From Macrostomum lignano (Eukaryota), in assembly GCA_002269645.1 (NCBI GenBank), contig NIVC01000270.1, forward strand, positions 1 through 64,000: DNA of 64,000 bases, in the 5' to 3' direction. The notes beneath the pieces were generated by a model, which saw nothing but the letters and a program-made list of their open reading frames with translations, searched no databases and was not told where the DNA came from. The position numbers and the translations under genes are program-made. Positions 507 to 61,111 of this stretch are shown in pieces (the first letter of the stretch is position 1; every line of letters begins with the position of its first letter).

Positions 507-682
507 GTGGACATGGGATATTTGGACATGGATATTTGGACATGGGATATTTGGACATGGGGTATTCAGACATGGGATATCTGGACATGGATATTTGGAC
601 ATGGGATATTTGGACATGGGATATTTGGACATGGATATTTGGACATGGGATATTTGGACATGGGATATTTGGACATGGATAT
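507..682. repeat. 15-bp minisatellite (ggacatgggatattt)n, left half of an array split by the LTR element
   Basis: Direct tandem copies; the same array resumes at 14050. Confidence 0.95.
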
Positions 683-1257
683 TGAAGTGATCTTAATTTA
701 AGCATGTTATGCCCAATGTTATTTTTTAGTCTAATGCGAACTTCAGAAGGTTTTTCTATCAGGAAAGTACAGCACATGCTTGTGCACCAGTAAAGATCCT
801 ATTGCGTGAAGCGAACACCAATGAAATGCGTTATAGAAATCATATATATACTAGCGTTCAGTGAGAATGAAGCCTCTCTCCAGTTTTCCCGGTTCTCGGC
901 TCTCCGCCTCTTTGCCTCCTCAACTGCTCCGCTAGCTTGCCCCAACAATCGGGCCTGAACTCTAATATCCCGATTTAACAGAGATAAATCCGGACAAACG
1001 TCAATTCGTGCAACAATATCGATAAGTAGCCTGTGGCTCCATTTTCACTGAATTGCTTAACAAATTTGCGTAATTGCGTGATCAATATCCTATTAGGAAT
1101 TGCTACTAACATTGATTAGTAATAAAATCTTGTTGAAGGTTAGAGATCGAGAGAAACAAATCGAACCTCCGACTTATTTGATTCAACAGCAACATCAACG
1201 ATCATAGTCATCGTCAGAGGGGCACACCCCCGCAACACATTATTCTAAAACATTTGA
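683..1257 (+). repeat. 5' LTR (575 bp), TGAAGTG...CATTTGA
   Basis: Matches 13473-14049 except three small indels seen by eye; contains a TATA-like catatatata (~841-850) and AATAAA (~1121). Confidence 0.95.
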
Positions 1258-1258
1258 C

Positions 1259-1270
1259 TGGCTCCCCGAC
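1259..1270 (+). promoter_or_regulatory. Primer-binding site TGGCTCCCCGAC, probably tRNA-Asp(GUC)
   Basis: Starts 1 nt after the 5' LTR; complementary to the recalled invertebrate tRNA-Asp 3' end (...GUCGGGGAGCCA). Confidence 0.75.
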
Positions 1271-3203
1271 CTTGTTTCTCTCCGTAATTTCCTTCAACAT
1301 GCCCGGCTTCAATATGCTGGGGTGAACACCTCCGTGGAGCTGGCTATGAGCTAGTGATGGCATCTTAGAAAGGGTCAGTAAAAAATATAAAAATTAAAAA
1401 ATTACAAAATATAAAAACCAATACAATTTGCAAAACTACAAAAATACTACGTGTATGATTCTCCCAAGCTGTAGAATCGTAGAAAAGATTAGTGTTATTT
1501 AATGTTCTTAAATTTACAACCTCTAATCGCTCTCCCGCTTCGGAGAACCAGCAGCGAACCAGTCCTCAAACCGGTTCCGATGGGAATCCACCCATTCCCA
1601 CTATTTACGCCCTTCTGATATACTTTCTCCGAGTACTTTGCTCGCCTCACCTCAAAGAACGTCAAGTTCACCTTGCTCTTTCTCCACAATCTCACTCTGT
1701 TCTATAAATATCCTGCCTGGGCGACAAATCCCAACCAGGCAACCAGCATTGTCTCAATCCTTTTTCTATTTTTAGCCTCGCAAAACCAGTTCTCGTCCGG
1801 AGAATTCCGCCTTTACTCCGGCTGGTTCACAGCAGATCTGCATCGTTTTTCGTCTTCTGGAAATTCTAGTTCCATTCCGGTCTGCATCAGTTCACAAACC
1901 AGCCTCAACTGGCCTCAGTTCGCCTCACTCAGTTGGCTAAAACGCCCTATCGGCTCCGCGCCTCACTCAGTTGGCTCAACGCCCTACCACAATTCAGCTG
2001 TGATCCGCTCCAGCTCTTCTCTCCGCTGCAATTCTCATCCCCAGGGATAGAAAGTGAGGGAGAATGATTCTGTCACACCGGTGCGACACTCTCAGTACTC
2101 TCAATCTTCTCTTACCCCAGGGAATTCATTTTTGTTTCAATGGCTGCTCCCCCTCCTTGGGCTTTCCCATCAGAAACCCCCATTGTTCTCTAATGGGAAT
2201 AATTTCCGTCCCAAGCTCTTATTTATACTACAATCCGCTTTCCTTCTCCGCAAAGTACAACCTACCACCCTCGTCTACCCATACACCAGCCCTTTAGCCT
2301 TCGCAGTCGTTCAAAATTTCTCAAAACAAAATAAAAATTACGCTGTGATTGCTACCCACCCTCTCCTATTCCCTATTCCTTGTTTCTCAATTTCAAGCAG
2401 CCACATCATTTTTCATGATTAGCAGCGATAAGCCCGCGGCAATTTGTCCTATACACAGGACCTCTACACCTGCCTTCAGGTAATTATAATTCTATTTTAG
2501 TCGGCCGAATCTATTTGTCAATTACACACTTAAACCCAGGACTGGTGCTTGGTTCATGCTCATCGTGTTCCAAGTTTGAAGTTTTGGCACGCCACTCATA
2601 CGCCTCTGCCTTGCTTCCACAGACTTCTGCAGAGTCTCTTTCGTTCCTTTTACAACAAATTCAAATCGCGTACTCAACACGCATCGCCACATCCGCTGGC
2701 ATCTTAACCACAACTCACCAGCTGAGTTTTCAACGCCAATCCGTTCAATCTCAAAGGCATCAATCAACGCGCACATTGCCGCCTCCGCTGAATCTTCTAC
2801 CGAAATCTGTTCAAATTCTAATCAAACTCAATCCAAGGATGAGGCTCAGCTTTTCTTGCTGCTTCTATGAAATATTTTAACCGCTCCACCGCTGAGCTAT
2901 ATTATAATTAGTACAGGCGCATCAGCCGACTCTACTCAGTTCTACTTTATACAACTGTTCAACACTTGCTCAAAATTGCTCTAAACTCACACTTTTGATA
3001 ATGATACTACAGCTACCGAAGCTCTACATATTGAAAATTTGCTTATATAAAACAAAAAACTGACCCTGGATAGATGACCGCAAATCACGCTCAGATGCTA
3101 TTGCTTCACGCTATTTCAAATCTTTATTGTTACAAAATTGCGGATTATTTTCAACTCTTAATTGCAAGACCACTCGAAGTAAACCCATTCCACAGATCAT
3201 TGC

Positions 3204-6200
3204 ATGAAATTGCGTTCTGGTACCCAACTCGGACAACAACAACAACAAGAGCCGCCTGCAATATCCACACCAAATTCTGCCAGTGTCGCTGAAAATCCTA
3301 TTGATATTTCTGGTGATTCTACTGGCTTTTGTGGACATTCTACTGGTATTGGTGGACATTCTACTGGCATTGGAGGACACCATACTGACGACACCCAACA
3401 GCAACTAACACAAACAGCTACCCCAGCTACATTTTGCCATCTACCTGGCCTCCATCAAGAAAACACTGCCATCGGCACCAGAGACGAAGAACAACCTTCT
3501 GAGTTGTACGAGCAGCAACAAGAACAACATCCTCCACAGCCACTTCTGCAACCTGATCATTTGAATCAAAATAACGCCAATATCCAGGAAACTGAGAGCA
3601 ACGTTACAATGGCAGAAGCACTAATGCAACAATTTATCAATGCTGTGCGAGATCAACAAAGACCACACGCTGCAATCCCAGCTAGTACCATCAACGAGAT
3701 CCGCGAAGGTCTCAAGGAGATAGATCAACTTCATGATTTTGCCTCTTTCATCATGGAGTATGATCTATCAGCGAGAACTTTTAATCTAGATGAAAACTCA
3801 AAGCTTCGCATCTTTCCTCGGCTCCTCAACGATCTCCTAAAGATCGAATATGCCGCTCTACCCGCCGAGACACAAAATGACTACACCCAATTAGTTCGGT
3901 CTCTGTCCGACAGAATAGCGGTACTCACTCTCGGATCCACTTCGGCACTACATCACATCGCCAACCGCCGACAACTCCCGGGTGAGCCATTCATCCAGTA
4001 CTACACGGACATTCGCCGCAAACTTCGTGCCATATACCCAGAAGTCTCGCCACTACCACCCGTGGATGGCGAAAATGCACCGGCTAACCAAGCGGTCATT
4101 GACCAACGAAATGAAATGTTTAACAAAACATTGATCGGCCATATACTAAGTGGCGCTCTACCTCACCTTCGCGTTGAACTACTGCGAAACCCGCTGAATA
4201 CCGAACAACAGCTGCTCAACCAGGCCATTCGCCTTGAACAAATACAGCAGTCTTCACAATTAACGGCCCCAAACAACGTTCCGGCCGATATAGAAAAACG
4301 CCTTGCTGCCTTAGAATGTGGAACCATCAAGCCCAAGCCAATAGTAGCGGCTATTCAAGGCGCTAGCAATACTAGAGAACCACCAACGTGCAAATTCTGC
4401 CACAGGATTGGACACACAACAGATCGATGCTACCAGGATCCTCGAAATGCACGCCAACAAACTGCCAATGCTAGACAACCAAGACAGGCTGACTCTAAGT
4501 GGACACGCAATCAACCGATTCAAGACCGGTACAGACGAGGCTCCGATGATCCTCGCAGCCGAGACACAGGCTCTCCAGCCAAATACTGCCACTTTCACAA
4601 CTCGGACACCCATGATACCGAAGAATGTCGTACCCTACACGATATTAAACAGGGGAGAACAACAAACAATAACCCACAGCGGTATAATCTAGGCCGGCGC
4701 GTACAATTTCAGCGCAACCCCACTCAACGATATCAACGGGAACGCCACTCTGATTCACCAAACCACGGACGTTCCAGAACACCGTCACCGCGCCCTCCTG
4801 CAGCCGGTGTAAACTCAATTCAGGTTGTCTCGAACGACCCCATGCCACAACTGCCGACTATGGACTCGCCTCAACAAATTGTGCCACCGAACAGCACACC
4901 CAGTGCTCCACAGCGTCTCACTGAGGTTCCTGTGGCAAAATCAACGGCTACTCCAACCTATGCTTTGGACAGACCAATTGAGTACAAGTTCCATGGCTCG
5001 ACCAGGCAGTTTAAGAAATTAATCCGCGACAGTCCATCTACACTGTCAGTCATCCACGTTCAACCGTACACTACGCTATCAGCCGCTCAACCAAAGCTAA
5101 GAAAAGATATGCTACGTGCCCAGCGACAGCAGGTACACGTAAAAAGACCACTGTCTCAGCAGAAAGGACGTCGACTAACTGGTCTAACGACGCTTCTCGT
5201 GACACTCATCTGGCTATCGCTATTCCCGACGGTGCAGACAACACCACTGCCATCGAATCCTAAGCAACATCCACTCTACGTGGACACACCAATGCTCTGT
5301 CCATTAGATGGACCCGTGCGCATCTTCAAGATTCCTCAGCAGATCAGATGCGAACAGTTCACGTCGTCACAGGACGTTACGACACCAGTGCACTTACAGC
5401 TCTACTCTACTAACCTGGAGCAAACCAGAACACCAGTCAGCTTATGCTTCCGTGAGGAAATCTCGGTTAATTGCCTCCCAATGAGCCAGGTTCTGCGCTC
5501 TCTCCGTGATGCGTACGTAACCTTACGCCCACTTACAGTCGCCGCACAAGATTGCCAACATTGGACCGAATCATATAACTCACCTGATGGTCAGCTTCAA
5601 CTGGTTGCCACCACTGGAAACTACAAAATCTCTCGCTCCAATACAGGAACCTCCTTCCTCGAAGACTGTTACCATCGCAAGGCACGAACTCAAATAGTTT
5701 CAACACTCATACAAGGGATAATAGCTTTCGCCTCTCCTAGCAAACCAATGGAATCGTTAGCCTTCTCCATGGCACACTGTAGCTATTCATCTCAAGGCTG
5801 CATTATTGAGACAACCTTTGACAACATGAAACGCTATAACCTACCGACAACTCTCCTTCAAAACGCATGGGACACTCTCGACCCACCGGCGACACAACAA
5901 CTGACCGTTACTGGCCAACGAAAACTGACACTTACGTGGAAAACAACAAGCCGTTCGGACTGTATACTCACGCCATTCCGACAAATTCGAGGTAACATAC
6001 ACTCGGGATTCTTCATTAACGAAGAACAGACATTGGCTTTGACCTTTAAATTGCCGCTTCAACCCTTCCGCCTTACCTGCTCAATTGGAACGAAACGACT
6101 ATATGTTTCCGAACAAGAACTGTACGTTGAAGTGCTCGACAACAGAGAAGAAGACTTCTTAAAGTCAATCGCGATTGTGCAATCTACAGCTGATGACACC

Positions 6201-9200
6201 ACGAGCAACACAACACGCTCTGTCAAAGCCGCGGATGCTTTAACAGCTGACAGCAGCTCATCTTCTCGACAGAGCCGTTCACTACCTGACTTATTGGCTA
6301 CCACAGAACAACCGTCAACCACACCGATTCCGACGACAGTTCAAGCTCCAACTATTACGTCTCTACCCTCACAGCAGACGCTTGATACAGCTTCACCTAC
6401 ATCCGAGCCTACTGTCACTACCACTACAATTAAAAAATCTACTACCACACCTCTAAATCTGGAAATTACAACTCCACCAACTACGACAATAGCGACTAGT
6501 ACAGTTCAAACACCCACAACAACGATGTCGCTTAGAAAACCTCAACACACTACATCTCTTCAACTTAAGTCTACAACTCTACCAACGACAGTAGCCACAA
6601 CTACAGTTACGTCGTATAGTCCGCTAACTACGAAAACGACGACATCTACCGGTATTACCACCGAACAACTAACTCCTGGACCTATGTCTACAACACCTAC
6701 TACCATACTGGAACCTGATCCTCTTAATATACCATACCTACACCGCGACCAACCACCAATGCTGGAACATCAGGACAGAATCCGTCGCGCGATTCCACCT
6801 CCAGACAAAACAGTCAACATCACCAACGCTGAACTCAAGCTATCAGAAAACCTCGTTTCGGCACAGCTTCTCTCCAGTCAACTACAAGGACTTCAATCGA
6901 AGACTCTACTCGATCTCAAGAAACTACACACTCAACTGACGACTACGCAGTGCAAGATGTACGCTTTGAATCTTCGCTATAGTCGCAACCTATACTATAC
7001 CAATCCGACACTAGCTGCGCGTCAATTATTCGCTGACAAATTCATTTATGCGCACTCCATCGCTGGCTACATCTTTGTTCACCAATGTAAGCCACTAAGT
7101 CAGTTCCAGTTCGTTCAACCGCGATACTCACGAGACGAATGCTACACAAGACCACCGATACAATTTCAACTCCACAATAAGTCTGTTCTCGGATTCCTCG
7201 ATACAACGACATCGATCATCTCAACAGCAAGACCACCACTAATATCCTGCCGTTACCTACGAGACTACTATCTTCCAAAGGGTGAATTCATCTACAAAGC
7301 CACAGCCAACTTCAGCTCCTTTAGTCCGATAGAAGCACAAAATAGATCCGACGAAACCTACCTCCTACAGTCCTTATACTCCGACATTAGACAGAGTATC
7401 TTCACGCCACTTGGAGACGTCAACTACAGCGCTTTACGATCACCAGTAACAATAACTGACATGATGGAAAGTTTCATCCAAACACGTGATTTTCTAATCA
7501 CTGTCTTTAAACTAAACAACGCTACTGGACGTCTCCACAAGGATGAATTCAAGCAGTTTGGCCTAAACGCCTTGGAAGCTTACCAGAATCTTTGGACATC
7601 TACCTTCTTCAGTTGGGAAAGATTCCAACAGAATCATATGGAGAAGTTTCTGTTCAGTTCTGCTGTAATTGTCTACGCTGCACTACTAATTTTCCTTTGC
7701 AACATTGGTCGAATCTGCGTTGCCAACACACTAACTTATGGTCGAACACACCGCCTTATGGTAATGCGAACGACCGACCCATCACCGCAACAAAACCGGA
7801 GCCCACAGCGACTTCCTACTACCTCCGACCACGTGTCGTTAGTACCATTAGTACTTACTTCGCCCTCTAGGAGAAACACAAAGGCGACAGCCCCATCAGC
7901 TCCACCTATGGAACTCGAAGAACGACAGCCAGCTATACCGTCTACTTCTTCACGGACAGATTCAAGACTCTACCCGACACTTCAACACTGGCCGGTTGCC
8001 TACAACACCGTCTTGAAACATCTTACGATGCGAACCCTCATCACGCTCTGGTGCACAAGCCCAAGAATGACCAAATGCAAGTGCACCGCGCTGATTGATA
8101 GTGGCGCCTCTATCTCTTGCGTTTCACCTACCTTCGCACAGAAACTACAGGCTGACATTTTACCCTGTAAAATACGCGTTCAATGTGCAGGAGGACAACT
8201 TCTTAACGTAACTAAACAGGCTAAATTTAGTATGATCATCGGATCATCAAATCGGAAAATCACAGCTTACATATTGGAGGCTATGCCACCCGATTATGAT
8301 CTAATTCTCGGTGTCGAAACCTTTAAATCCCTTGGCATACCACTGTCCATTGACTACGCCAAGTCAGAAGCACAAATCGATGGCACTTCGTTTCCCATAT
8401 TGAATACTTACACAGCAACTGAGGTCGCTGAAGTCTACTTGCCAAAGCAGACTCACATACCCGCTCAATCTACCACCTGGATACAGGCGAATATCGACAC
8501 GACCTATCCAAAGCGCCAGCCTGTCCTATTCATACCAAAGGATCATACTATTCAACGCTATAAGCTCTTAATCGCAAGCTGCTTGACGCTTACAGATGAA
8601 ACGGGTAATTCGATCCTCATACAGATCGCTAACCCTTCACTACAGCCAGTAACACTCTATGCTCAAACACGATTAGGCAGTCTGTCCGATCCCGCGGAAT
8701 ATACACCTGTTACTTCAAAACCTACAGCAACAGTCAATACCATCTCTACCTCGCACGCACGACCTGAGACCGACCGCCAGCTAATTGAACAACAAACACG
8801 GCCTAACAATTCGCATCTGACACCCGAACAAGCTACGAGACTGTGCGACCTACTTTTAGAGTACCGAGATACGCTGGCTCTGTTACCTACGGATATGGGA
8901 TGCACTACTCAATATACCGCCACAATTAACGTTCAACCACATACGCATCCAATTACATCGCGACCTTTTCCGATTGCACATGGTCTTCAAGAGCGTTTTG
9001 ACCAACTGATCGAGAATTTCATCCACAAAGGAATACTCAGCCCTAGCGAGTCGGAATACTCAAGCCCATGTCTACTGGTCGAAAAGAAGACACTTGATGA
9101 ACAAGGACGCCGCCAATTGCGTCTTGTCGTTGACTTTCGCCGTCTCAACCGAATTCTAACAACACCAAGCATACGCCCGCCACGTATACCGGACCTCCTA

Positions 9201-11762
9201 CACCGCCTACGCGACGCCAAACTTTATTCGTTGTGCGACCTTGCCGACGCGTTTTACCAAGTCCGACTAGACCCAGACAGCGCCAAATATACCGCCTTCA
9301 TCGCACCTAATGGCCTCCTTTTTCAGTTTAATCGCTTGCCACAGGGTCTGGCCGCATCTCCCAGCCTGATGTGTCGTCTAGTCGCTCTACTCACAGCAGA
9401 TTCACCTAATCTTATCGCCTACCTGGACGATGTACTCCTAATCGCAAAGGACTTTAATGGCATGCTGGGTGAACTCAGACATTTCTTGGCGAAACTCCGC
9501 CATCACGGTCTTCGTATCTCGCTTAGAAAATGCACCTTTGCAAAGAACGAAGTACAGTATCTAGGCTTTCAAGTGTCCGAACATGGAATCCGACCGGCAC
9601 CAGCGCTTGTCGAAAAAATTAAGAACTTCCCGGAACCTAAGACACCTAAGCAACTGCAGTCCTTCCTCGGACTTGCCAACTTTTATCGCTCGCATGTACA
9701 AGGATACTCTACGATTGTGACACCATTGCTTCGTGCTCTCAAAGACGCTCTGGCTACAAAAAGTTTGAAATGGACTACTACCACACAGACGGCCTTTGAC
9801 AACATCCGAAAGATTCTGTCAACTGATATTATACTAGTACATCCTGATCCTCGAAAGCCCTACGTGCTTCATACGGATGCCTCTGACTACTCTCTTGGTG
9901 CAGTCCTCTCTCAACACGATTCGCGTGGACATCTGCAACCCGTCGCTTACATCTCTAAAACTTTGACTCCGACGGAACAACGTTATCCTGCCATTGAGAG
10001 AGAAGCCTATGCTATCTATTGGGCGATTCGGAAGCTCCATGTTTTCCTATACGCCTCACACCTACCATTTACAGTGTTCACGGATCACCAACCGTTGCAA
10101 TCTCTGTTCACTGACAAACAGCCTCTCTCGAAACGACTGCAAAAGTGGATTCTACATCTACAGGATTACCAATTTTCGATCCACTATATTAAAGGCCGCT
10201 CAAACGCTGTAGCCGACTGCCTGTCCCGTATTCCTAGTGTGAATACTTTACATCCCATCCCAGCCTTTGACAACTTGCACGAAGCAGTAAACCAAGACCC
10301 ATTCTGTGCGACAGTGATAGCCACTCTACAGAACCAAAAAGACGACGTACTAACATCCATGTACAAGAACTTATCGAAAACAGAACAAAAACATCTGACG
10401 AAACATCTACACCACTTCTACTACACCAACGACACACTCTACTACGATCCATTGGAAGGTGACTCTCGTAGTCCTAACTCGTCGACACCACGTCTGGTGA
10501 TCCCAACCGCCTACAGAGACGCTCTCCTTCAGGAATGCCATTCCTCTCCATTTGGAGGACACCTTGGTCTTCAGAAAACCTTGTCCCGACTCAGCAAATT
10601 CTACTATTGGCCCAATTGCCACGCAGACGTGACAAGCTTCGTTAACAAATGCGAGATTTGTCAAAAAGCCAAATCAGGACCTCGACTGCGTTCAGAACAG
10701 AAAGCAATGAAATTCCGCAGTGTCTTCTCACACCTGGCTATTGATCTTGTAGGACCGTTACCACCGGCTCATTACATGCGAGATGTGTACAAGTACATCT
10801 TGACAGCTCAGTGTGGTGTTAGCAAATTTCTGTTCACGATACCACTGGCTGATACAACCACGTCTACTATTTGCAACCATTTGTTTCGACATGTCTTCGC
10901 GATAGCCGGACTTCCGGCCTGTCTGATTTCTGATAATGGACCACAGTTCATTTCCAAGGAGTTCCGCGAGTACATGGACACAATGGGAATCCGACTGATC
11001 TACACATCAGTCTATCAACCATCCAGCAATTTCGTAGAACGTGCCCACCGAAACCTCAAACAGACACTAACTACCTTTGTGCACGACAAGCCCGATCACT
11101 GGATCGAATATTTGCCAGCAGTGACTCTTGCGTTGAACACCGCAGCCCACACTGCCATGAAGGAATCGCCATTCTACCTGTTCTACGCCCGTGACTTCCT
11201 GGCACCCAGCACAAGAATCCTCGAAAATCAAATATCGATCTACACCGAGGAAATCCAACCAATCAGCTTGACCTGCTCAGCGATCACATTGGCCAGAGAA
11301 ATTGCTCTCCATCACCTACACTCTACAGCCGATCAACGGGCCCAGAAACAGAACGAAGAAAAAGCCCCTAATGCTCAAAAGCTCACCATAGGCTCCCGCT
11401 GTTACTTAGACATATCTGCTACTAAGCCGACAAAGTTCTCTAATCCGTTCCGAGGACCGATGCGAATTCTAAAATGGCTGAGCCCACAGAATGCGCTAAT
11501 CCAGGATATTAATAAGCTGACAGAGCCACCATTCGTAGTCCATGCCTCCAAGCTAAAACGTTCCCCTTTTCAACCACAAGAGGAACTCAATCTGCCGAAC
11601 TTCACATCATCGATACCACAGACTCACTTCGACCACCACCCGCCACTGGCACAGCATCACGCTACTCAGACTGACGTCGTGGATGAGCCTGACACTCGTG
11701 ATCAGCACGGACTAGAACCTATTCCAGCTGTGCGATATCATCTGCGCTCACGGGATGTGTGA
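3204..11762 (+). CDS. 2852-aa Gag-Env-like-Pol polyprotein
   Basis: Zinc knuckles CKFCHRIGHTTDRC (4389-4430) and CHFHNSDTHDTEEC (4587-4628); hydrophobic signal (5169-5240); TM (7647-7700); protease LIDSGAS (D at 8097); RT YLDD (9420-9431); RNase H LHTDAS (~9870); integrase HHCC plus D-D-E motifs IDLVGP / SDNGPQF / VERAHR (~10500-11100). No stops or frameshifts. Confidence 0.97.
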   Translation: MKLRSGTQLGQQQQQEPPAISTPNSASVAENPIDISGDSTGFCGHSTGIGGHSTGIGGHHTDDTQQQLTQTATPATFCHLPGLHQENTAIGTRDEEQPSELYEQQQEQHPPQPLLQPDHLNQNNANIQETESNVTMAEALMQQFINAVRDQQRPHAAIPASTINEIREGLKEIDQLHDFASFIMEYDLSARTFNLDENSKLRIFPRLLNDLLKIEYAALPAETQNDYTQLVRSLSDRIAVLTLGSTSALHHIANRRQLPGEPFIQYYTDIRRKLRAIYPEVSPLPPVDGENAPANQAVIDQRNEMFNKTLIGHILSGALPHLRVELLRNPLNTEQQLLNQAIRLEQIQQSSQLTAPNNVPADIEKRLAALECGTIKPKPIVAAIQGASNTREPPTCKFCHRIGHTTDRCYQDPRNARQQTANARQPRQADSKWTRNQPIQDRYRRGSDDPRSRDTGSPAKYCHFHNSDTHDTEECRTLHDIKQGRTTNNNPQRYNLGRRVQFQRNPTQRYQRERHSDSPNHGRSRTPSPRPPAAGVNSIQVVSNDPMPQLPTMDSPQQIVPPNSTPSAPQRLTEVPVAKSTATPTYALDRPIEYKFHGSTRQFKKLIRDSPSTLSVIHVQPYTTLSAAQPKLRKDMLRAQRQQVHVKRPLSQQKGRRLTGLTTLLVTLIWLSLFPTVQTTPLPSNPKQHPLYVDTPMLCPLDGPVRIFKIPQQIRCEQFTSSQDVTTPVHLQLYSTNLEQTRTPVSLCFREEISVNCLPMSQVLRSLRDAYVTLRPLTVAAQDCQHWTESYNSPDGQLQLVATTGNYKISRSNTGTSFLEDCYHRKARTQIVSTLIQGIIAFASPSKPMESLAFSMAHCSYSSQGCIIETTFDNMKRYNLPTTLLQNAWDTLDPPATQQLTVTGQRKLTLTWKTTSRSDCILTPFRQIRGNIHSGFFINEEQTLALTFKLPLQPFRLTCSIGTKRLYVSEQELYVEVLDNREEDFLKSIAIVQSTADDTTSNTTRSVKAADALTADSSSSSRQSRSLPDLLATTEQPSTTPIPTTVQAPTITSLPSQQTLDTASPTSEPTVTTTTIKKSTTTPLNLEITTPPTTTIATSTVQTPTTTMSLRKPQHTTSLQLKSTTLPTTVATTTVTSYSPLTTKTTTSTGITTEQLTPGPMSTTPTTILEPDPLNIPYLHRDQPPMLEHQDRIRRAIPPPDKTVNITNAELKLSENLVSAQLLSSQLQGLQSKTLLDLKKLHTQLTTTQCKMYALNLRYSRNLYYTNPTLAARQLFADKFIYAHSIAGYIFVHQCKPLSQFQFVQPRYSRDECYTRPPIQFQLHNKSVLGFLDTTTSIISTARPPLISCRYLRDYYLPKGEFIYKATANFSSFSPIEAQNRSDETYLLQSLYSDIRQSIFTPLGDVNYSALRSPVTITDMMESFIQTRDFLITVFKLNNATGRLHKDEFKQFGLNALEAYQNLWTSTFFSWERFQQNHMEKFLFSSAVIVYAALLIFLCNIGRICVANTLTYGRTHRLMVMRTTDPSPQQNRSPQRLPTTSDHVSLVPLVLTSPSRRNTKATAPSAPPMELEERQPAIPSTSSRTDSRLYPTLQHWPVAYNTVLKHLTMRTLITLWCTSPRMTKCKCTALIDSGASISCVSPTFAQKLQADILPCKIRVQCAGGQLLNVTKQAKFSMIIGSSNRKITAYILEAMPPDYDLILGVETFKSLGIPLSIDYAKSEAQIDGTSFPILNTYTATEVAEVYLPKQTHIPAQSTTWIQANIDTTYPKRQPVLFIPKDHTIQRYKLLIASCLTLTDETGNSILIQIANPSLQPVTLYAQTRLGSLSDPAEYTPVTSKPTATVNTISTSHARPETDRQLIEQQTRPNNSHLTPEQATRLCDLLLEYRDTLALLPTDMGCTTQYTATINVQPHTHPITSRPFPIAHGLQERFDQLIENFIHKGILSPSESEYSSPCLLVEKKTLDEQGRRQLRLVVDFRRLNRILTTPSIRPPRIPDLLHRLRDAKLYSLCDLADAFYQVRLDPDSAKYTAFIAPNGLLFQFNRLPQGLAASPSLMCRLVALLTADSPNLIAYLDDVLLIAKDFNGMLGELRHFLAKLRHHGLRISLRKCTFAKNEVQYLGFQVSEHGIRPAPALVEKIKNFPEPKTPKQLQSFLGLANFYRSHVQGYSTIVTPLLRALKDALATKSLKWTTTTQTAFDNIRKILSTDIILVHPDPRKPYVLHTDASDYSLGAVLSQHDSRGHLQPVAYISKTLTPTEQRYPAIEREAYAIYWAIRKLHVFLYASHLPFTVFTDHQPLQSLFTDKQPLSKRLQKWILHLQDYQFSIHYIKGRSNAVADCLSRIPSVNTLHPIPAFDNLHEAVNQDPFCATVIATLQNQKDDVLTSMYKNLSKTEQKHLTKHLHHFYYTNDTLYYDPLEGDSRSPNSSTPRLVIPTAYRDALLQECHSSPFGGHLGLQKTLSRLSKFYYWPNCHADVTSFVNKCEICQKAKSGPRLRSEQKAMKFRSVFSHLAIDLVGPLPPAHYMRDVYKYILTAQCGVSKFLFTIPLADTTTSTICNHLFRHVFAIAGLPACLISDNGPQFISKEFREYMDTMGIRLIYTSVYQPSSNFVERAHRNLKQTLTTFVHDKPDHWIEYLPAVTLALNTAAHTAMKESPFYLFYARDFLAPSTRILENQISIYTEEIQPISLTCSAITLAREIALHHLHSTADQRAQKQNEEKAPNAQKLTIGSRCYLDISATKPTKFSNPFRGPMRILKWLSPQNALIQDINKLTEPPFVVHASKLKRSPFQPQEELNLPNFTSSIPQTHFDHHPPLAQHHATQTDVVDEPDTRDQHGLEPIPAVRYHLRSRDV
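5169..7700 (+). other. Envelope-like glycoprotein region within the polyprotein (putative class III / gB-type fusogen)
   Basis: Basic n-region plus hydrophobic h-region, Cys-rich ectodomain (PMLCP...IRC), Thr-rich insert, RIRR site, motif C..Y...NPTLAARQLF...A...G..FVHQC...ECY..PP...GFLD...I...C, 7 N-glycosylation sequons and a C-terminal TM helix. Confidence 0.8.
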
Positions 11763-13460
11763 ATCAATACGCGGCAGTTGATTATCGATGGACAGTTGAT
11801 TATCGATACGTTTTGAAAATTATTTTCGTTTATATTATTTCTATTAGTTTTATAATTATATATTATATCTTTCTTCCTCTTAAATCGCAATTTATCATTT
11901 TCCGCTTCAACTTATCTATCTTCGTTAGATAATTTCCTTGACAATACGCTACTCTTTTGCTACTCACAGTAGAAATGTCAGTTCTCAACACTCTTATCAA
12001 AATTATTGTTTTATTCTGTTGTCGTCAAACGCTTTAGCCCTACATTTTATTTGCTTACCTTTAATTACTTTCACTCACCCTTGAAAAAATTTATCAGAAC
12101 CATCTTCTCTACTCTTGCTCACCCACGTGAACTCAATGATCTTTTCTTTCGTCACCTCATAATCCCTATTCGGTCTTTTGTAAGACCACGCGTTACCCGG
12201 ATCTACACAGCCGTCCCGCTCTACACTGCAATCCGGCTCTACACGCTGCCCTGACCGAAATTCAGCTTCGACTCTGTTCAACACCAACCCGGCCCACTGC
12301 CCAGCCATATCTACTACTTGCAAACAACCTGCTATGCTCCGAATTAACAGACTACATGCCTGCTACCGACAACTACGGCTAACTACGAACTACGACACCG
12401 GCCTGACTACAGAAACCCTACTGGCTGCAACAAAACTAAGACGAACAGCACTATCTGACACGTGGTGGCCTTGAAAAAGGCCGTTTTGACGTTGGCGCCC
12501 AAAGGACGCAGAAGACTTGGCAGACCAACTGTGCCGTTACACCGCAGTCTCCTGGACACGGGCAGTTGCAGCGGGCCGCAATTTTGCGCGACAACAGCGG
12601 CTCCAGCAGCCAAAGCAGCAACAACACTTGCAGCAACAACAGCAGGCTACAAACGCCGCCACTAGCAGTAACAGCAGCAGCAGCATGATGGCGACGACCG
12701 CGCTGATGGAAATGAAGTACGCGTGCCGCCCCTGGAGAATACCAGCCGCGATCTCTGTAATTTGCTCTCTTCCCAAAGACAGACCAGCCATTGACTAATC
12801 TAACTTGAATGAAAAACGAGCTATATCGAAACTTAAAAACAATTGCGGACAAAACCTGAACTAGAAAATTCCCTCCCTATCGTTTTTTATCTTATTTATA
12901 CCACGCGACTCCATCCTTTCCTTTGAATTAGCTTCAGTGTACACTCACGCGCTCTACGAACACCCACCCCAAGTCAATAATCTCTTCGACCCCACGTACA
13001 ATGTACATTCCACACCCTTGATTAAAAATAGCTTTCTTTTTCACCTTGCGTCCCAGTCGTTTCTTTAATAATCTCAATTTCGTTTGACTGTCCTTTACTC
13101 AATTTTATTTATACCTCTAACTTTACTTGTTGCCTATTTTCGTCCATCTGAAAATTCTCTGTTTTATCTGTCTTTGTCTGTTTTAGCAAACCCTTTAATA
13201 AGCCACTTTTGAAACTTATTTTATCCTCCTTGCTATTCCTCTGTTCATTTAACTTTGGTTTCAACAGCTTTACTCTAATATTTAAGACCCTTTCCTAAGC
13301 CATGCTCTATGCTTATTTTCACCATTTTACTCACCACTTTATCCACTTTCTCTAGCCTACACCTTGCGCCTCGTATGCAAGTAGCATTAGTTACAACTTC
13401 ACTAATAATCCAACACCTGTTTTCTTTTGCTTATGCCGCTCGGTGGGCCTTCGCTTTGTG

Positions 13461-13472
13461 AAATAAGGGCAA
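13461..13472 (+). promoter_or_regulatory. Polypurine-tract-like sequence AAATAAGGGCAA
   Basis: Purine-rich 12-mer abutting the 3' LTR. Confidence 0.65.
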
Positions 13473-14049
13473 TGAAGTGATCTTAATTTAAGCATGTTAT
13501 GCCCAATGTTATTTTTTAGTCTAATGCGAACTTCAGAAGGTTTTTCTATCAGGAAAGTACAGCACATGCTTGTGCACCAGTAAAGATCCTATTGCGTGAA
13601 GCGAACACCAATGAAATGCGTTATAGAAATCATATATATACTAGCGTTCAGTGAGAATGAAGCCTCTCTCCAGTTTTTTCCCGGTTCTCGGCTCTCCGCC
13701 TCTTTGCCTCCCAACTGCTCCGCTAGCTTGCCCCAACAATCGGGCCTGAACTCTAATATCCCGATTTAACAGAGATAAATCCGGACAAACGTCAATTCGT
13801 GCAACAATATCGATAAGTAGCCTGTGGCTCCATTTTCACTGAATTGCTTAACAAATTTGCGTAATTGCGTGATCAATATCCTATTAGGAATTGCTACTAA
13901 CATTGATTAGTAATAAAAATCTTGTTGAAGGTTAGAGATCGAGAGAAACAAATCGAACCTCCGACTTATTTGATTCAACAGCAACATCAACGATCATAGT
14001 CATCGTCAGAGGGGCACACCCCCGCAACACATTATTCTAAAACATTTGA
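13473..14049 (+). repeat. 3' LTR (577 bp)
   Basis: Direct repeat of 683-1257, followed by ATAT and resumption of the 15-bp array. Confidence 0.95.
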
Positions 14050-14610
14050 ATATTTGGACATGGGATATTTGGACATGGGATATTTGGACATGGGATATTT
14101 GGACATGGGATATTTGGACATGGGGTATTCAGACATGGGATATCTGGACATGGGATATTTGGACATGGGATATTTGGACATGGGATATTTGGACATGGGA
14201 TATTTGGACATGGGATATTTGGACATGGGATATTTGGACATGGGATATTTGGACATGGGATATTTGGACATGGGATATTTGGACATGGGATATTTGGACA
14301 TGGGATATTTGGACATGGGATATTTGGACATGGGATATTTGGACATGGGATATTTGGACATGGGATATTTGGACATGGGATATTTGGACATGGGATATTT
14401 GGACATGGGATATTTGGACATGGGATATTTGGACATGGGATATTTGGACATGGGATATTTGGACATGGGATATTTGGACATGGGATATTTGGACATGGGA
14501 TATTTGGACATGGGATATTTGGACATGGGATATTTGGACATGGGATATTTGGACATGGGATATTTGGACATGGGATATTTGGACATGGGATATTTGGACA
14601 TGGGATATTT
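14050..14610. repeat. 15-bp minisatellite (ggacatgggatattt)n, right half
   Basis: About 37 nearly perfect copies. Confidence 0.97.
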
Positions 14611-14661
14611 ATGGCGATATGGCATATTGAAATGCCAGGGCACACATCAAAATGCTCGTAC

Positions 14662-17600
14662 TTGGCTGCAAGCTGCTGGGCCTCCCGCTGCAGAGTTTCA
14701 ACTTCCTGCCTCGCCTGCAGCGCCTCAGTCGCAGATCTGGCCGCCTGATCCTCAGCCGAGCGCAGTTGCCGTTCCAATTCGCGCTGGGCTTTCTCCCGCT
14801 TCTCCGCCTGGCCTTTCAATGCCGACCGTTCGGTCTCCAGCTCGGCGACTCGCTCCTCCGACCGGCGGGCCCAGCGTCGGTTCTCCTCGGCATCGTCCAG
14901 GCTGGCGCGAAGTTTTGCCTCCAGCTCCGAGCGGGCCCGAGCCTCCAGCTTGGCCTCGTCGTCTTGGCGAGCCAGCCGGTCCTCGGCGACCAGCGCCCGC
15001 TCCTGCAGCCTGGCTAGTTCAGCTTGGCACTCCTGCAGCCGGCCGCGCAGACCGTCAGCCGCTGTTTGCGATCGTTGAACAGCCGATTGAAGGGCCGATC
15101 GCTGCTGCTCAGCCTGACGATGAGCGGTTCGCTCTGAGCACAGCTGCAATTCGCGTTCGCCAAGTTGCTCCTGCAATTCTGAGCGCTCGTTTTCTAGCGC
15201 CGATTGGCGCGCCCGGCTGGCGCGGATCTCCGCCGACTGCCGCTCCCGATCGGCCTCGGACTGACGCAGCGCTGATTGGCTCTGAGCGGGTTCGGATTGG
15301 CGAGTTGGGGATTTTATAGAAACACAGGGCTCTGTAAGGCCGCTTTCATTAGGGGCTTTTGAGCACGACAATTGGCCAGAGGGTTGTCATGCGATTCACA
15401 GCCATGAGGGCCAGCCCCCCCCCCCAAAGGCACAAAGTGTACATGCTTGACGATTAGACAGTCACTGCCGCTGCACACTGTGTGCGCGTGTGCATGAGTG
15501 CGTGCCTGCGCAGTGTTGTCGCGCTTGTATGTGCTCAGGACCCGCGGAATGGGCAGAATTGCCCCAGCGCTAGTTGCGTAGGACGATGTCGCCGAAGACA
15601 TTGCGCCAGGGTGACTGAAGTGCCCGAAGACTGTCCGACACTAGACTCAGAGCACTCTCCGACAATAGACTCAGAGCACTCTCCGACACTAGACTCAGAG
15701 CACTCTCCGACAATAGACTCAGAGCACTCTCCGACACTAGACTCAGAGCACTCTCCGACACTAGACTCAGAGCACTCTCCGACACTAGACTCAGAGCACT
15801 CTCCGACATTAGACTCAGAGCACTCTCCGACACTAGACTCAGAGCACTCTCCGACATTAGACTCAGAGCACTCTCCGACACTAGACTCAGAGCACTCTCC
15901 GACACTAGACTCAGAGCACTCTCCGACACTAGACTTAGAGAACTCTCCGATATTTGACTCATAGCACTCTCCGACACTAGACTCAGAGCACTCTCCGACA
16001 CTAGACTCATAGCACTCTCCGACACTAGACTCAGAGAACTCTCCGACACTAGACTCATAGCACTCTCCGACACTAGACTCAGAGCACTCTCCGACACTAG
16101 ACTCAGAGCACTCTCCGACATTAGACTCAGAGCACTATCCGACACTAGACTCAGAGCACTCTCCGACACTAGACTCAGAGCACTCTCCGACAATAGACTC
16201 AGAGAACTCTCCAACACTAGACTTAGAGAACTCTCCGATATTTGACTCATAGCACTCTCCGACACTAGACTCAGAGCACTCTCCGACACTAGACTCATAG
16301 CACTCTCCGACACTAGACTCAGAGAACTCTCCGACACTAGACTCATAGCACTCTCCGACACTAGACTCAGAGCACTCTCCGACACTAGACTCAGAGCACT
16401 CTCCGACACTAGACTCAGAGAACTCTCCGACACTAGACTTAGAGAACTCTCCGACATTAGACTCAGAGCACTCTCCGACACTAGACTCAGAGCACTCTCC
16501 GACACTAGACTCAGAGAACTCTCCGACACTAGACTTAGAGAAATCTCCGATATTAGACTCATTGCACTCTCCGACACTAGACTCATAGCACTCTCCGACA
16601 CTAGACTCAGAGCACTCTCCGACACTAGACTCAGAGCACTCTCCGACACTAGACTCAGAGAACTCTCCGACACTAGACTTAGAGAAATCTCCGATATTAG
16701 ACTCATTGCACTCTCCGACACTAGACTCATAGCACTCTCCGACACTAGACTCATAGCACTCTCCGACACTAGACTTAGAGAAATCTCCGATATTAGACTC
16801 ATTGCACTCTCCGACACTAGACTTAGAGAAATCTCCGATATTAGACTCATTGCACTCTCCGACACTAGACTCATAGCACTCTCCGACACTAGACTCATAG
16901 CACTCTCCGACACTAGACTTAGAGAAATCTCCGATATTAGACTCATTGCACTCTCCGACACTAGACTCAGAGAACTCTCCGACACTAGACTCAGAGAACT
17001 CTCCGACACTAGACTCAGAGAACTCTCCGACACTAGACTCAGAGGACCCTATACCCGTTCTCGTTCAGCTCTGCTTCTTAGAAGGTACAATAGAACTTCT
17101 ACAGAACAATAGACAGATTAGCAGCCCACCTGCTTCAAAGCCGCCTCCGCCTCGGCCAACTTGGTGCCCCGATCGGCCAACTGACTGACAGTCCGGTCGT
17201 GAATTGCTTTCAAATTGGCCGTCTCGGCCAGGCAGGAGGTCAGCGCCTCCTCCAATTCTGTCACGCGTCCGGTGGCTGCGTCGGCCCGGGATTCCAGCTC
17301 GGCCATGGCTGCCTGGCTCGCCTCGCCTAGCCGGCCAAGCTCGGCCTCGATGGCGGCCGATTTCCGTTCGGCTGTCCGGGCTGCCTGGCCAAGGTCGCGG
17401 TTCTCGCGGCCCAGCTCGGCTAGGCGGCGGTCAGCGTCAGCCGCGGCCGCTCTGACCGACTGTGGAGGATTTGGGAATACGAAGATGGGAGTTAAGCCGA
17501 AGGAAGGGTTGTTAATTCAGTAAGTAAGAGAGATTAAAAATCTGGGAGGAATTAAAAACCCGGTAGAATTTGGTAAAAGGGATTAACGAACCGGTAGAAG

Positions 17601-25099: not shown

Positions 25100-26458
25100 A
25101 GTCATTCTTCGGCAAATTTGTGAGCGATTCTATGAAAAATTTGTTTGCGATTTTAATGAAAATTTGTGAGTGATTCTATGTGAAATTTGTATGCGATTTT
25201 AATGAAAATTTGTGAGTGATTCTATGTGAAATTTGTATGCGATTTTAATGAAAATTTGTGAGTGATTCTATGTGAAATTTGTATGCGATTTTAATGAAAA
25301 TTTGTGAGTGATTCTATGTGAAATTTGTAAGCGATTTTAAGTAAAATTTGTGAACTATTCTATCTGAAATTTGTATGCGATTTTAATGAAAATTTGTGAA
25401 CTATTCTATCTGAAATTTGTATGCGATTTTAATGAAAATTTGTGAGTGATTCTATGTGAAATTTGTAAGCGATTTTAAGTAAAATTTGTGAACTATTCTA
25501 TCTGAAATTTGTATGCGATTTTAATGAAAATTTGTGAACTATTCTATCTGAAATTTGTATGCGATTTTAATGAAAATTTGCGAGTGATTCTATGTGAAAT
25601 TTGTATGCGATTTTAATGAAAATTTGAGTGATTCTATGTGAAATTTGTAAGCGATTTTAAGTAAAATTTGTGAACTATTCTATCTGAAATTTGTATGCGA
25701 TTTTAATGAAAATTTGAGTGATTCTATGTGAAATTTGAATGCGATTTTAATGAAAATTTGAGTGATTCTATGTGAAATTTGAATGCGATTTTAATGAAAA
25801 TTTGTGAGTGATTCTATGTGAAATTTGTATGCGATTTTAATGAAAATTTGAGTGACTATGTGAAATTTGTATGCGATTTTAATGATAATTTGTGAGTGAT
25901 TCTATGTGATATTTGTATGCGATTTTAATGAAAATTTGTGAGTGATTCTATGTGATATTTGTATGCGATTTTAATGAAAATTTGAGTGATTCTATGTGAA
26001 ATTTGTATGCGATTTTAATGAAAATTTGTGAGTGATTCTATGTGATATTTGTATGCGATTTTAATAAAAATTTGTGAAAGATTCTATGTGAAAATTGTAT
26101 GCGATTTTAATGAAAATTTGTGAAAGATTCTATGTGAAATTTGTAAGCGATTTTAATGAAAATTTGTGAAAGATTCTATGTGATATTTTTAAGCGATTTT
26201 GAGGAAAATTCGTGAACGATTCTATGTGAAATTTGTAAGCGATTTTAATGAAAATTTGTGAAAGGTTCTATGTGATATTTGTAAGCGATTTTGAGGAAAA
26301 TTCGTGAACGATTCTATGTGAAATTTGTAAGCGATTTTAATGAATATTTGTGAAAGATTCTATGTGATATTTGTAAGCGATTTTGAGGAAAATTTGTGAA
26401 CGATTATATGTGAAATTTGTATGCGATTTTGTATGAAAATTGTATGAAATTTGTATGC
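25100..26458. repeat. AT-rich ~42-44-bp satellite (gattctatgtgaaatttgtatgcgattttaatgaaaatttgtga), left part
   Basis: Tandem copies built from ~21-bp subunits; resumes at 29423. Confidence 0.95.
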
Positions 26459-28981
26459 CAGGCCACAGTTTTGTAGGGCTCGGCCCGTACCAATCGCACT
26501 GGAGGCCAAGATCAACGCGGAGCTGGATCGATTGCAAATGTTGGGCGTCATCGAGCCCATTGAGGGCCCTGTCAACAACGCGTCGCCCGTCGTGTGGGTG
26601 AAGAAGAAGGATGGCTCATTAAGAATGTGTGCCGACTATAGCGTACACGTCAACGCAAAAATCCAATCAGATTCCTACCCCATTCCAAACGTCGAGACGA
26701 TGTTCTCACGGCTCAAGAATTCAAAGACATTCGCTACTGTGGATTTGCGTTCTGCCTATTGGCAGATCGAACTGGATGATTCCGCTCGGGATTTATCCAT
26801 AATAAACACATCCCGGGGGCTCTACCGCGTCAATAGGCTTCAAATGGGGATGAAGAACGCTTCCTTCATCTTCCAACGCACAATGGAGTCCATTTTGGGT
26901 GATATTAAAGGTCTACTCATCTACCAAGATGATATTCTCGTACACGCACCGGACGCAGTCGTCTTGGAGAAGCGACTAGCGGCAGTCAGGAAGCGCCTCA
27001 CCGAGAAGCGAGTGACTATAAACGAATCCAAGTGCATCAACTACTCTGACTCTGTGTCATTTCTAGGCTTCCGGATTTCCGCCGCCGGAATCCAGCCAGA
27101 CGAGCGTCTCGTAGAGAAGATTCGCCATGTATGCATACCGAAAAACAAGACGGAGCTCTCCCAGTTTCTAGGTCTAGTCAATTTCTTCGGACGATTGATT
27201 CCGAACTTTGCAGGCAAAACTGCTCCGCTTAACAGACTGCGAAAGGCTGGCATTCCGTTCACCTGGTCAGACGAGTGTTCCCGAGCCTTCAATAATCTGA
27301 AAGCGGAGATTGCATCCGCGCCGGTCGTGCAGCCATACAGTCTGACTAAAGAGCTGATTCTGACGACAGATGCGTCCAAAGGTGCACTCGCCGCCGTGGC
27401 AACGCAGGAGGGTCATCCGGTAATATACGTCTCCCGTACCCTTTCGGCCGCTGAAAGCAACTATTCAAACATCGAACGCGAAGCACTTGCAATCTTCTGG
27501 GCCGTCTCCCGACTCAAGCATTTCCTACACGGTCGCAAGTTCGTGATTCAGACAGATCATCAGCCGCTACTGCGCCTCTATGGAAGCGGGATTCCGCTAA
27601 ATACGTCAGCGAGGATTGGCCGCTGGGCCATGTACTTAATGCAGTTCGACTTTGACATCCGGTACGCGCGAGGGAGCAGCATTCCCCATGCTGACGCAAT
27701 TTCTAGACTGCGCTTTGACGACTGCACCTCGGACGACAAGGAGACGTTTGAAGCTATTAATGCTGTGGCTTTTGAGGCACCGGTGATTGACGCAGATAGG
27801 GTTGCAGCCGAACTGAGTACTGACGCGTTCGCTCAACGCATCTTGGAGCGTGTACGCTCCGGCAATTGGAGGAGTTGCAGTCAGGCAGAGGCATCCTTCA
27901 AGAAGGTTGCGGAGACACTAACGCTGGAGAACGGGCTTCTCTATATGCAGAGACGCGTGTTTATACCACCGCGGCTGCGCAAGGCAGCGTTTGAGGCCGT
28001 TCATGACACCCATTCAGGTGCACAAGCTTCGTACAACCTGCTCTCAGCGTCCTGCTGGTGGCCTGGCATGCAGCAGGATGTAACCCAGTTTGTCCAGCGC
28101 TGCCCAGGCTGTTGCCACTTGCGACCTCGCTTGGGAAATGACAGAGACCACTGGCCGGCAGCTTCGTACCCGTTTCAACGTATCCATATGGACTGGGCCT
28201 ATGTGAAGGACGCCGGTAACATTCTAGTCATCGTTGACACATTTTCTGGCTGGATAGAGGCATTCCCCTGTCGGAATAGAACTGGCGAATCAGTTATGCA
28301 GTGTTTGCGCGCAGTGTTCGCACGCTTTGGAGTGGCCGAGCTGGTAGTGTCCGATAATGCACCAGAGTTCATCGGTGATCCCCTCTACTCTTGGCTACGG
28401 GCCAATGGTGTCCATAAACTTGAATCGCCAGCTTATTATCCACAGGCAAACGGAGCGGCCGAACGCGCTGTACAGACCGTCAAAGCTGCACTGCGCGCGT
28501 GGTCAGAGAGAGAATTACGCACATGGAATTCAGCCATTTTCTGCAGAAAGTGCTGCTCCACCATCGGAACTCAGCATCGTCGCGGGGGCAATGCCCGGCC
28601 GAGATACTGTTCGGCAAAAAGCTCAGAGTACCGGTGGTGACGCACTTTGAGCAAGGTGACGGCGTCATGTATCGGCCTACCGCCTCCGCAAGCACCAACT
28701 CAGCCACATTTCTAATGACGTCAGGGCGCAACACCGCATGGATTCTGGCTAAAAATGGATTGCACCTGGCCAGTACAAACCAACTGGCGCCCGCGGCCGA
28801 TCCATTCGCCACCGACGAGGAGGATAGCTATGAAACCGATGCTCCAGTTCCGAACGTCGACGAGGACTCAAGAGACGAAGACCCTGCTACGGGACAGGAG
28901 GGTCCAACCCAGGAGCATGGGGCTGCGTTGCCCCGCCGTAGCACCCGTGCATGCCGCGCGCCTGATCGCTTCTCACCATGA
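26459..28981 (+). pseudogene. Truncated pol with a +2 frameshift at the AG run (~28505-28513)
   Basis: Integrase C-terminus continues in ORF 28499-28981 (RITHMEFSHFLQKVLLHHRNS...CPAEILFG). Confidence 0.85.
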
Positions 28982-29160
28982 TTGACTCACTGACAATTCT
29001 TCAGATAACAAAAACTGCTCTACTTAATCATATACCTAACATAACGCTCTGGCATAGTCGTTTCCCACATATGATAGTTTGAATAGTTCTTTCTATGATT
29101 GTTGCTCACGCGCGTATGCGTGAATATCGGCCCCACGCCCTTCGTTCCGTAAGGGGGACA

Positions 29161-41430: not shown

Positions 41431-41459
41431 ATCCTATACATGTAGCCAAGCTTATCAAG

Positions 41460-61052: not shown

Positions 61053-61111
<59 letters not shown>

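Follow-up and report, generated by a model that had tools for sequence, protein, structure and literature searches.

A probable GAG-ENV-POL Ty3/gypsy element of Macrostomum lignano carrying a predicted gB-type Env homolog within a single reading frame

The locus described here, positions 3204 to 11762 of a 64,000-nt stretch of DNA from the flatworm Macrostomum lignano (assembly GCA_002269645.1, contig NIVC01000270.1, forward strand; the whole stretch is referred to below as the window), raises the question whether an envelope-like (Env) fusion glycoprotein is encoded in frame between the Gag and the protease of a gypsy retroelement, and to what kind of element such an arrangement belongs. Investigation of the reading frame, its copies and relatives and its flanks indicates that this is very probably a complete, young, multi-copy Ty3/gypsy (Metaviridae-type) element of the GAG-ENV-POL kind, in which a single open reading frame (ORF) holds a class III Env, similar to gB and to the nyami- and chuvirus glycoproteins, between Gag and the Pol enzymes protease (PR), reverse transcriptase (RT), RNase H (RH) and integrase (IN). 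The parts of the ORF are the following, the predicted transmembrane segment being abbreviated as TM.

3204..11762, + strand: Gag-Env-Pol polyprotein ORF, 2852 codons from ATG to stop, 0 internal stops, 0 frameshifts
3204..5159, + strand: Gag, with a Q-rich N-terminus, capsid-like region, CCHC and variant knuckle, basic linker and PSAP at aa 566
5172..5234 (aa 657-677), + strand: internal hydrophobic segment with KGRR just before it, candidate internal signal peptide or signal anchor
5241..6203, + strand: N-terminal, beta-rich part of the Env ectodomain, equivalent to gB domain I/II and containing 10 Cys, from AlphaFold2 (AF2), Foldseek and the Cys common to relatives
6204..6773 (aa ~1001-1190), + strand: mucin-like Ser/Thr/Pro-rich insertion, 50-63% S/T/P, predicted disordered
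6777..6788 (aa 1192-1195), + strand: furin-like motif RIRR, directly ahead of the central helix
6789..7646, + strand: Env ectodomain, C-terminal part, with long central helix, beta-rich crown, extended segment and aromatic membrane-proximal region
7647..7718 (aa 1482-1505), + strand: predicted TM or stop-transfer helix, Kyte-Doolittle peak 2.33, kept in relatives
7719..8078, + strand: presumed cytosolic tail or linker from the Env TM to PR, with PSAP at nt 7893-7904 and YPTL at nt 7971-7982
8079..8327 (aa 1626-1708), + strand: PR, Pfam PF13650 and PF13975
9108..9575 (aa 1969-2124), + strand: RT, Pfam PF00078, 7e-24
9771..10169 (aa 2190-2322), + strand: RH, Pfam PF17917 and PF17919
10500..11021, + strand: IN, with H2C2 zinc finger (aa 2433-2491) and catalytic core (aa 2511-2606), Pfam PF17921 and PF00665

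The uninterrupted ORF from 3204 to 11762 that the original prediction had described was confirmed from its ATG to its stop, and the chance of 2852 stop-free codons in random sequence is about (61/64)^2852, roughly e^-137. The polyprotein runs from Gag (capsid, zinc knuckle) through a hydrophobic segment, a Cys-rich ectodomain of about 800 aa, a TM helix and a tail to PR-RT-RNaseH-IN. The positions predicted for the basic-then-hydrophobic segment as a whole (nt 5160-5240, aa 653-679) and for the second hydrophobic helix (nt 7647-7700, aa 1482-1499) proved exact, and the predicted Cys-containing region of about 840 aa with 7 N-x-S/T sequons corresponds to the 802 aa between the two hydrophobic segments (847 including both), which contain 14 Cys and 7 sequons. 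Regarding the zinc knuckles of Gag, which had been announced in the plural, a single canonical CCHC knuckle was found (aa 396-409, nt 4389-4430), while the second, at aa 462-475, has the non-canonical pattern C-x2-H-x4-H-x4-C, so that there are not several canonical ones.

Regarding Pol, the calls for PR, RT, RNase H, the IN zinc finger and the IN core all exceed the curated Pfam thresholds, and these five domains stand in the predicted order PR-RT-RH-IN. The best matches of Pol in the PDB are Ty3 Gag-Pol (7q5b, 1.3e-83) and Ty3 RT (4ol8, 5.7e-64), with the enzymes of caulimovirus, foamy virus, murine leukemia virus and human immunodeficiency virus scoring far behind, and none of the Bel/Pao or copia families was matched in the Pfam scan. 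A profile of Gag, built from the N-terminal region and five relatives, matches the capsids of Drosophila dArc2 (6.8e-5) and PNMA2 (2e-4) as well as retroviral nucleocapsid knuckles. Since Ty3 is the best match for Pol and Gag matches capsids and knuckles, the element is a Ty3/gypsy (Metaviridae-type) retroelement with normal Gag and Pol, in agreement with the gypsy affiliation originally proposed; a Bel/Pao or retroviral affiliation was ruled out, Ty3 being by far the best Pol match and no Bel/Pao family being matched. The Gag N-terminus (aa 1-140, nt 3204-3620) is Gln-rich and contains a short tandem peptide repeat of the GHSTGIGG type.

Regarding the Env segment, a phmmer search of 1.84 billion representative proteins returned the polyprotein itself and 48 Env relatives with E-values from 2.5e-48 to 9e-4. 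In the family alignment A1, which comprises the focal Env and 26 relatives (27 rows), 18 rows match the Monjiviricetes fusion glycoprotein family PF24664 (best 3.8e-14) and 3 match the herpesvirus glycoprotein B family PF00606. When the A1 profile was compared with the PDB, gB made up the best 36 of the 37 matches, the top one being varicella-zoster virus (VZV) gB with 7.2e-13 over profile positions 171-462. A protein homolog search with A2, a trimmed form of the alignment, yielded just two short proteins. The Cys pattern is shared as well, as 13 of the 14 ectodomain Cys are common to most relatives and four are invariant or nearly so; the C-terminal part of the ectodomain contains four invariant or near-invariant Cys.

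A structure model of the monomer was obtained with AF2 from alignment A1, a single-sequence run (mean pLDDT 35) having been discarded. The model predicts ordered beta-rich N-terminal domains, a long central helix, a beta-rich crown and a C-terminal TM helix at pLDDT 80-95, and a disordered stretch of 185 residues that coincides with the Ser/Thr/Pro-rich tract; this mucin-like tract sits in the furin-site loop and falls into gap columns in the relatives. Among the 50 matches listed by Foldseek against the PDB, all are herpesvirus gB (E-values 1e-14 to 2e-12, probability 1.00), with TM-scores of 0.37-0.45 normalized by target for post-fusion gB forms. Against BFVD, the matches are led by a Nyavirus glycoprotein (5e-21), followed by other glycoproteins (rhabdo-like, chu-related and orino-related) down to 1e-12, and include entomopoxvirus proteins, herpesvirus gB and the glycoprotein of the soybean cyst nematode virus (Socyvirus heteroderae). 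On the family profile, the relatives matching PF24664 and the Foldseek matches, the Env segment is a predicted homolog of the class III gB-type fusion glycoproteins, nearest to the Monjiviricetes G group. Both the gB-type fusogen and the chuvirus-type likeness put forward in the original prediction are borne out by these comparisons, the nearest viral folds in BFVD being those of nyami-, chu- and rhabdo-like glycoproteins.

The two hydrophobic segments that bracket Env are the sole Kyte-Doolittle peaks of at least 1.6 (19-aa window) in all 2852 aa. Similarly, the relatives that are long enough have hydrophobic segments on either side of Env, one just ahead of its N-terminal domain and another behind its C-terminal domain, and none inside, so that a topology with two hydrophobic segments is conserved across the Env family, its function in membrane insertion being predicted from sequence. 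The segment thus bracketed has the predicted features of a type I membrane protein, namely signal, ectodomain, membrane-proximal region and TM. A motif R-x-[KR]-R lies within the 80 residues ahead of the central helix in 16 of 25 rows, and in the profile alignment the R-x-R-R consensus of the Env family aligns with the RSRR motif of VZV gB.

Motifs resembling late domains occur on the presumed cytosolic side, with PSAP at aa 566-569 in the C-terminal region of Gag and PSAP (aa 1564-1567) and YPTL (aa 1590-1593) in the tail. The tail P[ST]AP occupies the same alignment column in the relatives P0002 and P0005, within an otherwise poorly conserved stretch; in a post-hoc look at tail shuffles, P[ST]AP arose in 1.8% and P[ST]AP together with YPTL in 0.06%. 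The tail motif would fit a cytosolic-side late domain that recruits the ESCRT (endosomal sorting complex required for transport) machinery, without being evidence for it.

With respect to other copies, the original prediction had allowed that these might lack the region; instead, Env stands between Gag and PR in near-identical copies and in distant relatives alike. The 90% cluster contains, as further Macrostomum lignano entries, the 2852-aa protein on two contigs (PAA47950.1 and PAA65221.1), a 2859-aa protein (PAA87129.1) and two fragments. Compared with the focal protein, one full-length M. lignano copy has 1 substitution and another has 8 substitutions and a 7-residue indel in Gag, and Env is present in all; the 7-residue length difference between the focal copy and P0053 is located in Gag. 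The Gag-Env-PR-RT order is also kept in distant relatives of 24-38% identity. In segment mapping, Gag is followed by Env within the single predicted proteins P0003, P0006, P0009 and P0020, and Env is followed by PR, or by RT-RH with or without IN, within P0003, P0030, P0035 and P0045, the last of which has the mapped Env segment and then PR, RT, RH and IN. According to Pfam, P0013 consists of CCHC, fusion glycoprotein and protease, P0017 has CCHC and protease on either side of its Env segment, P0029 has Retrotrans_gag, CCHC, fusion glycoprotein and protease, and P0035 has the fusion glycoprotein followed by protease, RT and RNase H. The gene order of the relatives is known from these predicted proteins, and no DNA-level locus of a distant relative was confirmed among metagenome contigs. 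As the same order is found in near-identical copies and in distant relatives, Env is not a one-off insertion. The database annotation of these proteins is just 'hypothetical protein' or 'RNA-directed DNA polymerase'. The record of the 1009-aa Gag-Env relative P0006 (MEE4246962.1, on a 9-kb contig) bears the title 'MAG: hypothetical protein [Kangiellaceae bacterium]', and P0006 is most likely encoded on a eukaryotic retroelement contig that was mis-binned into a bacterial metagenome-assembled genome.

The ORF lies within an element delimited by long terminal repeats (LTRs), which in turn interrupts a satellite array. Its parts outside the ORF, including the primer binding site (PBS)-like sequence and the two copies of the target-site duplication (TSD), are the following.

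683-14049, + strand: LTR retroelement, 13.4 kb, containing the 3204-11762 ORF
508..682, no strand: 15-bp satellite flanking the element on its 5' side (host target array), with one TSD copy as its last 4 bases (679-682, ATAT)
683..1257, + strand: 5' LTR, 575 bp, beginning with TG
842-850: TATA-like run in the 5' LTR, a consensus-level reading only
1121-1126: AATAAA in the 5' LTR, a consensus-level reading only
1259..1271, + strand: PBS-like sequence TGGCTCCCCGACC, opening with TGG, one base past the 5' LTR, read by eye
1258..3203, + strand: leader of about 1.95 kb, unusually long
11763..13472, + strand: 3' untranslated region of about 1.7 kb, unusually long, closing with a purine-rich tract
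13460-13472, + strand: purine-rich tract GAAATAAGGGCAA (also written GAAATAAGGG), abutting the 3' LTR
13473..14049, + strand: 3' LTR, 577 bp, direct repeat of the 5' LTR
14050..14610, no strand: 3' flanking 15-bp satellite, the first 4 bases of which (14050-14053, ATAT) are the second TSD copy

The LTRs are 99.3% identical over 578 aligned columns, with 0 mismatches and 3 indels. The same 15-bp satellite, with the unit ATATTTGGACATGGG, is present on both flanks, and excision of the element together with one ATAT restores the satellite register, which identifies ATAT as a 4-bp target-site duplication; the element is inserted into the 15-bp satellite. It is thus an intact, recently inserted, young Ty3/gypsy retrovirus-like element of Macrostomum lignano. 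That the flanking 15-bp repeat might be part of the LTR was ruled out by the mirrored satellite-LTR...LTR-satellite layout and by the register restored on excision. Both the leader and the 3' region are very long for a gypsy element, and the 3' region has a CAG/Gln-rich stretch near 12450-12850; none of the ORFs in the leader (1258-3203) or the 3' region (11763-13472) is convincing, and no sequence resembling either region occurs elsewhere in the window. ARAGORN detected no tRNA genes in the 64,000-nt window.

The possible novelty of the gene order that had been suggested in the original prediction did not hold, as this order has already been published (PMC13524379, main text; Sacco et al., 2022, as cited there). 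Ty3/gypsy elements with the order GAG-ENV-POL and a gB-type Env were described from Nematoda, Bryozoa and Platyhelminthes (Chary and Hayashi, bioRxiv 10.1101/2023.10.26.564294; eLife 2026, PMC13524379, main text), and in that survey of invertebrate genomes they were not monophyletic and most had several near-identical copies. The first report of nematode elements with flipped ENV/POL order is credited there to Sacco et al. (2022, J Gen Virol 103:001739). The Gag-Env-Pol order with a gB-type Env is therefore already described, and the focal element adds at most a new member to this group. All defining group features that could be tested are present, namely Env between Gag and Pol, a gB-type Env, and a Platyhelminthes host with several near-identical intact copies. 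Sacco, Lau, Godinez-Vidal and Kaloshian are said to have described, in their abstract of 2022, a continuous gag-env-pro-pol frame and an Env resembling the glycoproteins of Nyamiviridae and Chuviridae, a likeness that the focal Env family also has in its Foldseek and PF24664 matches.

Like the elements of Chary and Hayashi, as presented in the main text of PMC13524379, the focal element combines a Ty3/gypsy Pol with a gB-type Env between Gag and Pol that has a signal peptide or TM on one side and a TM on the other, and it shares with them a variable furin site, near-identical intact copies, LTRs more than 99% identical and a flatworm host phylum. In that main text GAG-ENV-POL is given as the arrangement of the ORFs; a fused polyprotein or membrane topology is not discussed there, the word 'polyprotein' is absent, and there is no mention of a mucin-like insert such as the one of 190 aa in the focal Env or of Macrostomum. 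Similarly, env and glycoproteins are unmentioned in a recent study of M. lignano LTR retrotransposons (PMC12801592). The nematode NERVs, as cited in the main text of PMC13524379, are also metavirus-type elements with env upstream of pol, but differ in host phylum, and the likeness to them is one of description.

Regarding more distant systems, the focal Env resembles herpesvirus gB and the Monjiviricetes G proteins (PF00606, PF24664) in its modelled fold and domain order, including a central helix after a furin-type site, and in its predicted disulfide cysteines, C-terminal membrane-proximal region and TM. Whereas gB and Monjiviricetes G are stand-alone proteins with an N-terminal signal, the focal Env is embedded in a polyprotein with Gag N-terminal to it and Pol fused to its cytoplasmic tail; unlike gB it has the mucin-like insert in the domain II-III loop, and its identity to gB is about 8-11%. 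Drosophila gypsy and the insect errantiviruses likewise have a Ty3/gypsy backbone with an added fusogen, presumed to serve cell-to-cell spread, but their env lies 3' of pol as a separate ORF, is expressed from spliced RNA and is of the F type (class I) (PMC13524379, main text). The polyproteins of flaviviruses, pestiviruses and alphaviruses offer an analogy only, in that a cytosolic capsid is followed by internal signal and stop-transfer segments threading glycoproteins into the endoplasmic reticulum (ER); these RNA viruses use class II fusogens, lack reverse transcription and have no homology to the focal element.

By what route such a protein might be made can be outlined as follows. The polyprotein is probably translated from full-length RNA, and Gag would be made in the cytosol until the segment at aa 657-677, acting as internal signal or signal anchor, directs the Env ectodomain into the ER lumen. 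There, N-glycosylation, O-glycosylation on the mucin-like tract, disulfide bonding and a furin-type cut at RIRR could take place, and the helix at aa 1482-1505 would stop transfer, leaving both Gag and the tail-PR-RT-RH-IN part cytosolic. The parts may be released by signal peptidase (the residues after the hydrophobic core are small, PTVQT-T) and/or by the protease of the element. Trimers of Env in the membrane around Gag particles would then enable passage from cell to cell, such as from the soma into germline or stem cells, in the manner of Drosophila gypsy. There are no stop codons (0) between Gag, Env and PR, and a ribosome translating Env therefore continues into Pol. As a tentative extension, which we hold to be possible though rather doubtful, the product may be a double-pass membrane Gag-Env-Pol polyprotein in which Pol would reach the budding particle by its tether to the Env cytoplasmic tail and not by fusion to Gag; the tail in question carries its own conserved P[ST]AP late-domain-like motif. 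To our knowledge, assembly with Pol tethered to an Env tail has not been documented for any retrovirus or retrotransposon. It is not addressed in the main text of the published GAG-ENV-POL survey either (PMC13524379).

Several points weigh against the interpretation as a GAG-ENV-POL element with a gB-type Env. Taken alone, the focal Env reaches PF00606 only below threshold (E=0.076, 12.9 bits versus a cutoff of 43), its own row has no Pfam match in the scan of the family alignment, and phmmer returned no match for it among PDB sequences. The Foldseek TM-scores are modest (0.30-0.45) with rmsd values of 12-16 A, which is attributed to the domain arrangement and the disordered insert of 185 aa, and membership in the Env family rests on transitive homology and on a model from an alignment of the same relatives. 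As the genome was duplicated recently, some of the near-identical copies may have arisen as homeologs or alleles and not by separate transposition. Transcription, translation, signal cleavage, glycosylation, trimerization, fusion and particle formation are steps that we infer from the sequence, and a single ORF would yield equimolar Gag, Env and Pol, which is unusual and unexplained.

This last point also favors a different account, in which Env is produced mainly from a spliced or subgenomic RNA, with an incidental in-frame layout and a full-length polyprotein that is minor or non-productive. Equimolar Gag, Env and Pol from one ORF would be awkward, retroviruses and insect errantiviruses as a rule make their env mRNA by splicing, and the ORF-less leader of 1.95 kb has room for a splice donor. 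Nevertheless, with no stop between the Env TM and PR, any RNA coding for Env also codes for Env-Pol; the Gag-Env-PR frame is kept in relatives at 24-30% Env identity, which suggests selection on the fused frame, and several lineages have the internal hydrophobic segment directly after Gag. Expression mainly by splicing is thus considered unlikely. Even less likely, and in our view improbable, is that Env is an inherited, non-working passenger of an element that spreads intracellularly like an ordinary LTR retrotransposon, its copies being too young for decay. Many env-bearing endogenous elements do spread in this way, the LTRs (99.3% identical, no substitutions) leave little time for decay, and the fusogen function is predicted from sequence and model. 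Conservation of the Cys, the furin-like site and the flanking hydrophobic segments at about 20-38% identity, however, requires long-term purifying selection on Env, and a useless large luminal domain amid Gag-Pol would be costly.

According to a further proposal, the env segment got into this one locus by nested insertion, or results from a chimeric assembly or a faulty gene model. This proposal draws on the very repeat-rich and hence misassembly-prone nature of the window, but it is effectively refuted, as the frame is continuous through both junctions, other contigs carry the 2852-aa protein or its 2859-aa variant, independent relatives from other samples keep the order within single proteins, and the arrangement is published for Platyhelminthes (PMC13524379, main text). 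The interpretation as a young, multi-copy GAG-ENV-POL element with a gB-type Env is accordingly preferred over these three.

Two further retroelements are present in the window. A small second Ty3/gypsy element (32028-36655) has LTRs of 356 bp at 32028-32383 and 36300-36655 that are 99.2% identical, and ORFs encoding PR (32803-33834) and RT-RH-IN (33759-36302), the latter sharing about 28% identity with the focal Pol; neither gag nor env was recognized in it. It lies inside a 28-bp satellite (31759-32029 and 36655-37172), in a mirrored layout as found for the focal element. On either side of a third RT-RH-IN ORF (26451-28640, in the region 25114-30271) lies a 46-bp satellite (25114-26441 and 29423-30271); LTRs were not detected for this retroelement. 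All three retroelements of the window thus lie inside different tandem arrays; as roughly 45% of the non-element sequence is estimated to consist of tandem repeats, three such locations have a chance of about 9%, and a preference for integration into satellites is possible. Tandem repeats account for about 30% of the whole window (rough estimate), and the long 'ORFs' on both strands at 14032-17033, 41471-44984 and 60816-62213 are artefacts of such repeats, namely the 15-bp and 24-bp satellites, a 48/383-bp array (41452-46134) and (ACAG)n (60979-61604).

Thus, the focal element provides a clean, apparently intact example of a recently recognized class, the invertebrate Ty3/gypsy elements with a gB-like fusogen upstream of pol, in a laboratory flatworm with good genomic and transcriptomic resources. 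It raises the question of how, and in which amounts, a Gag and a Pol in the cytosol and a glycoprotein in the lumen would all come from one reading frame. Concrete targets for transcript and proteome studies of this question are offered by conserved features, namely the bracketing hydrophobic segments, the furin-like site and the Env-Pol linker with its P[ST]AP.

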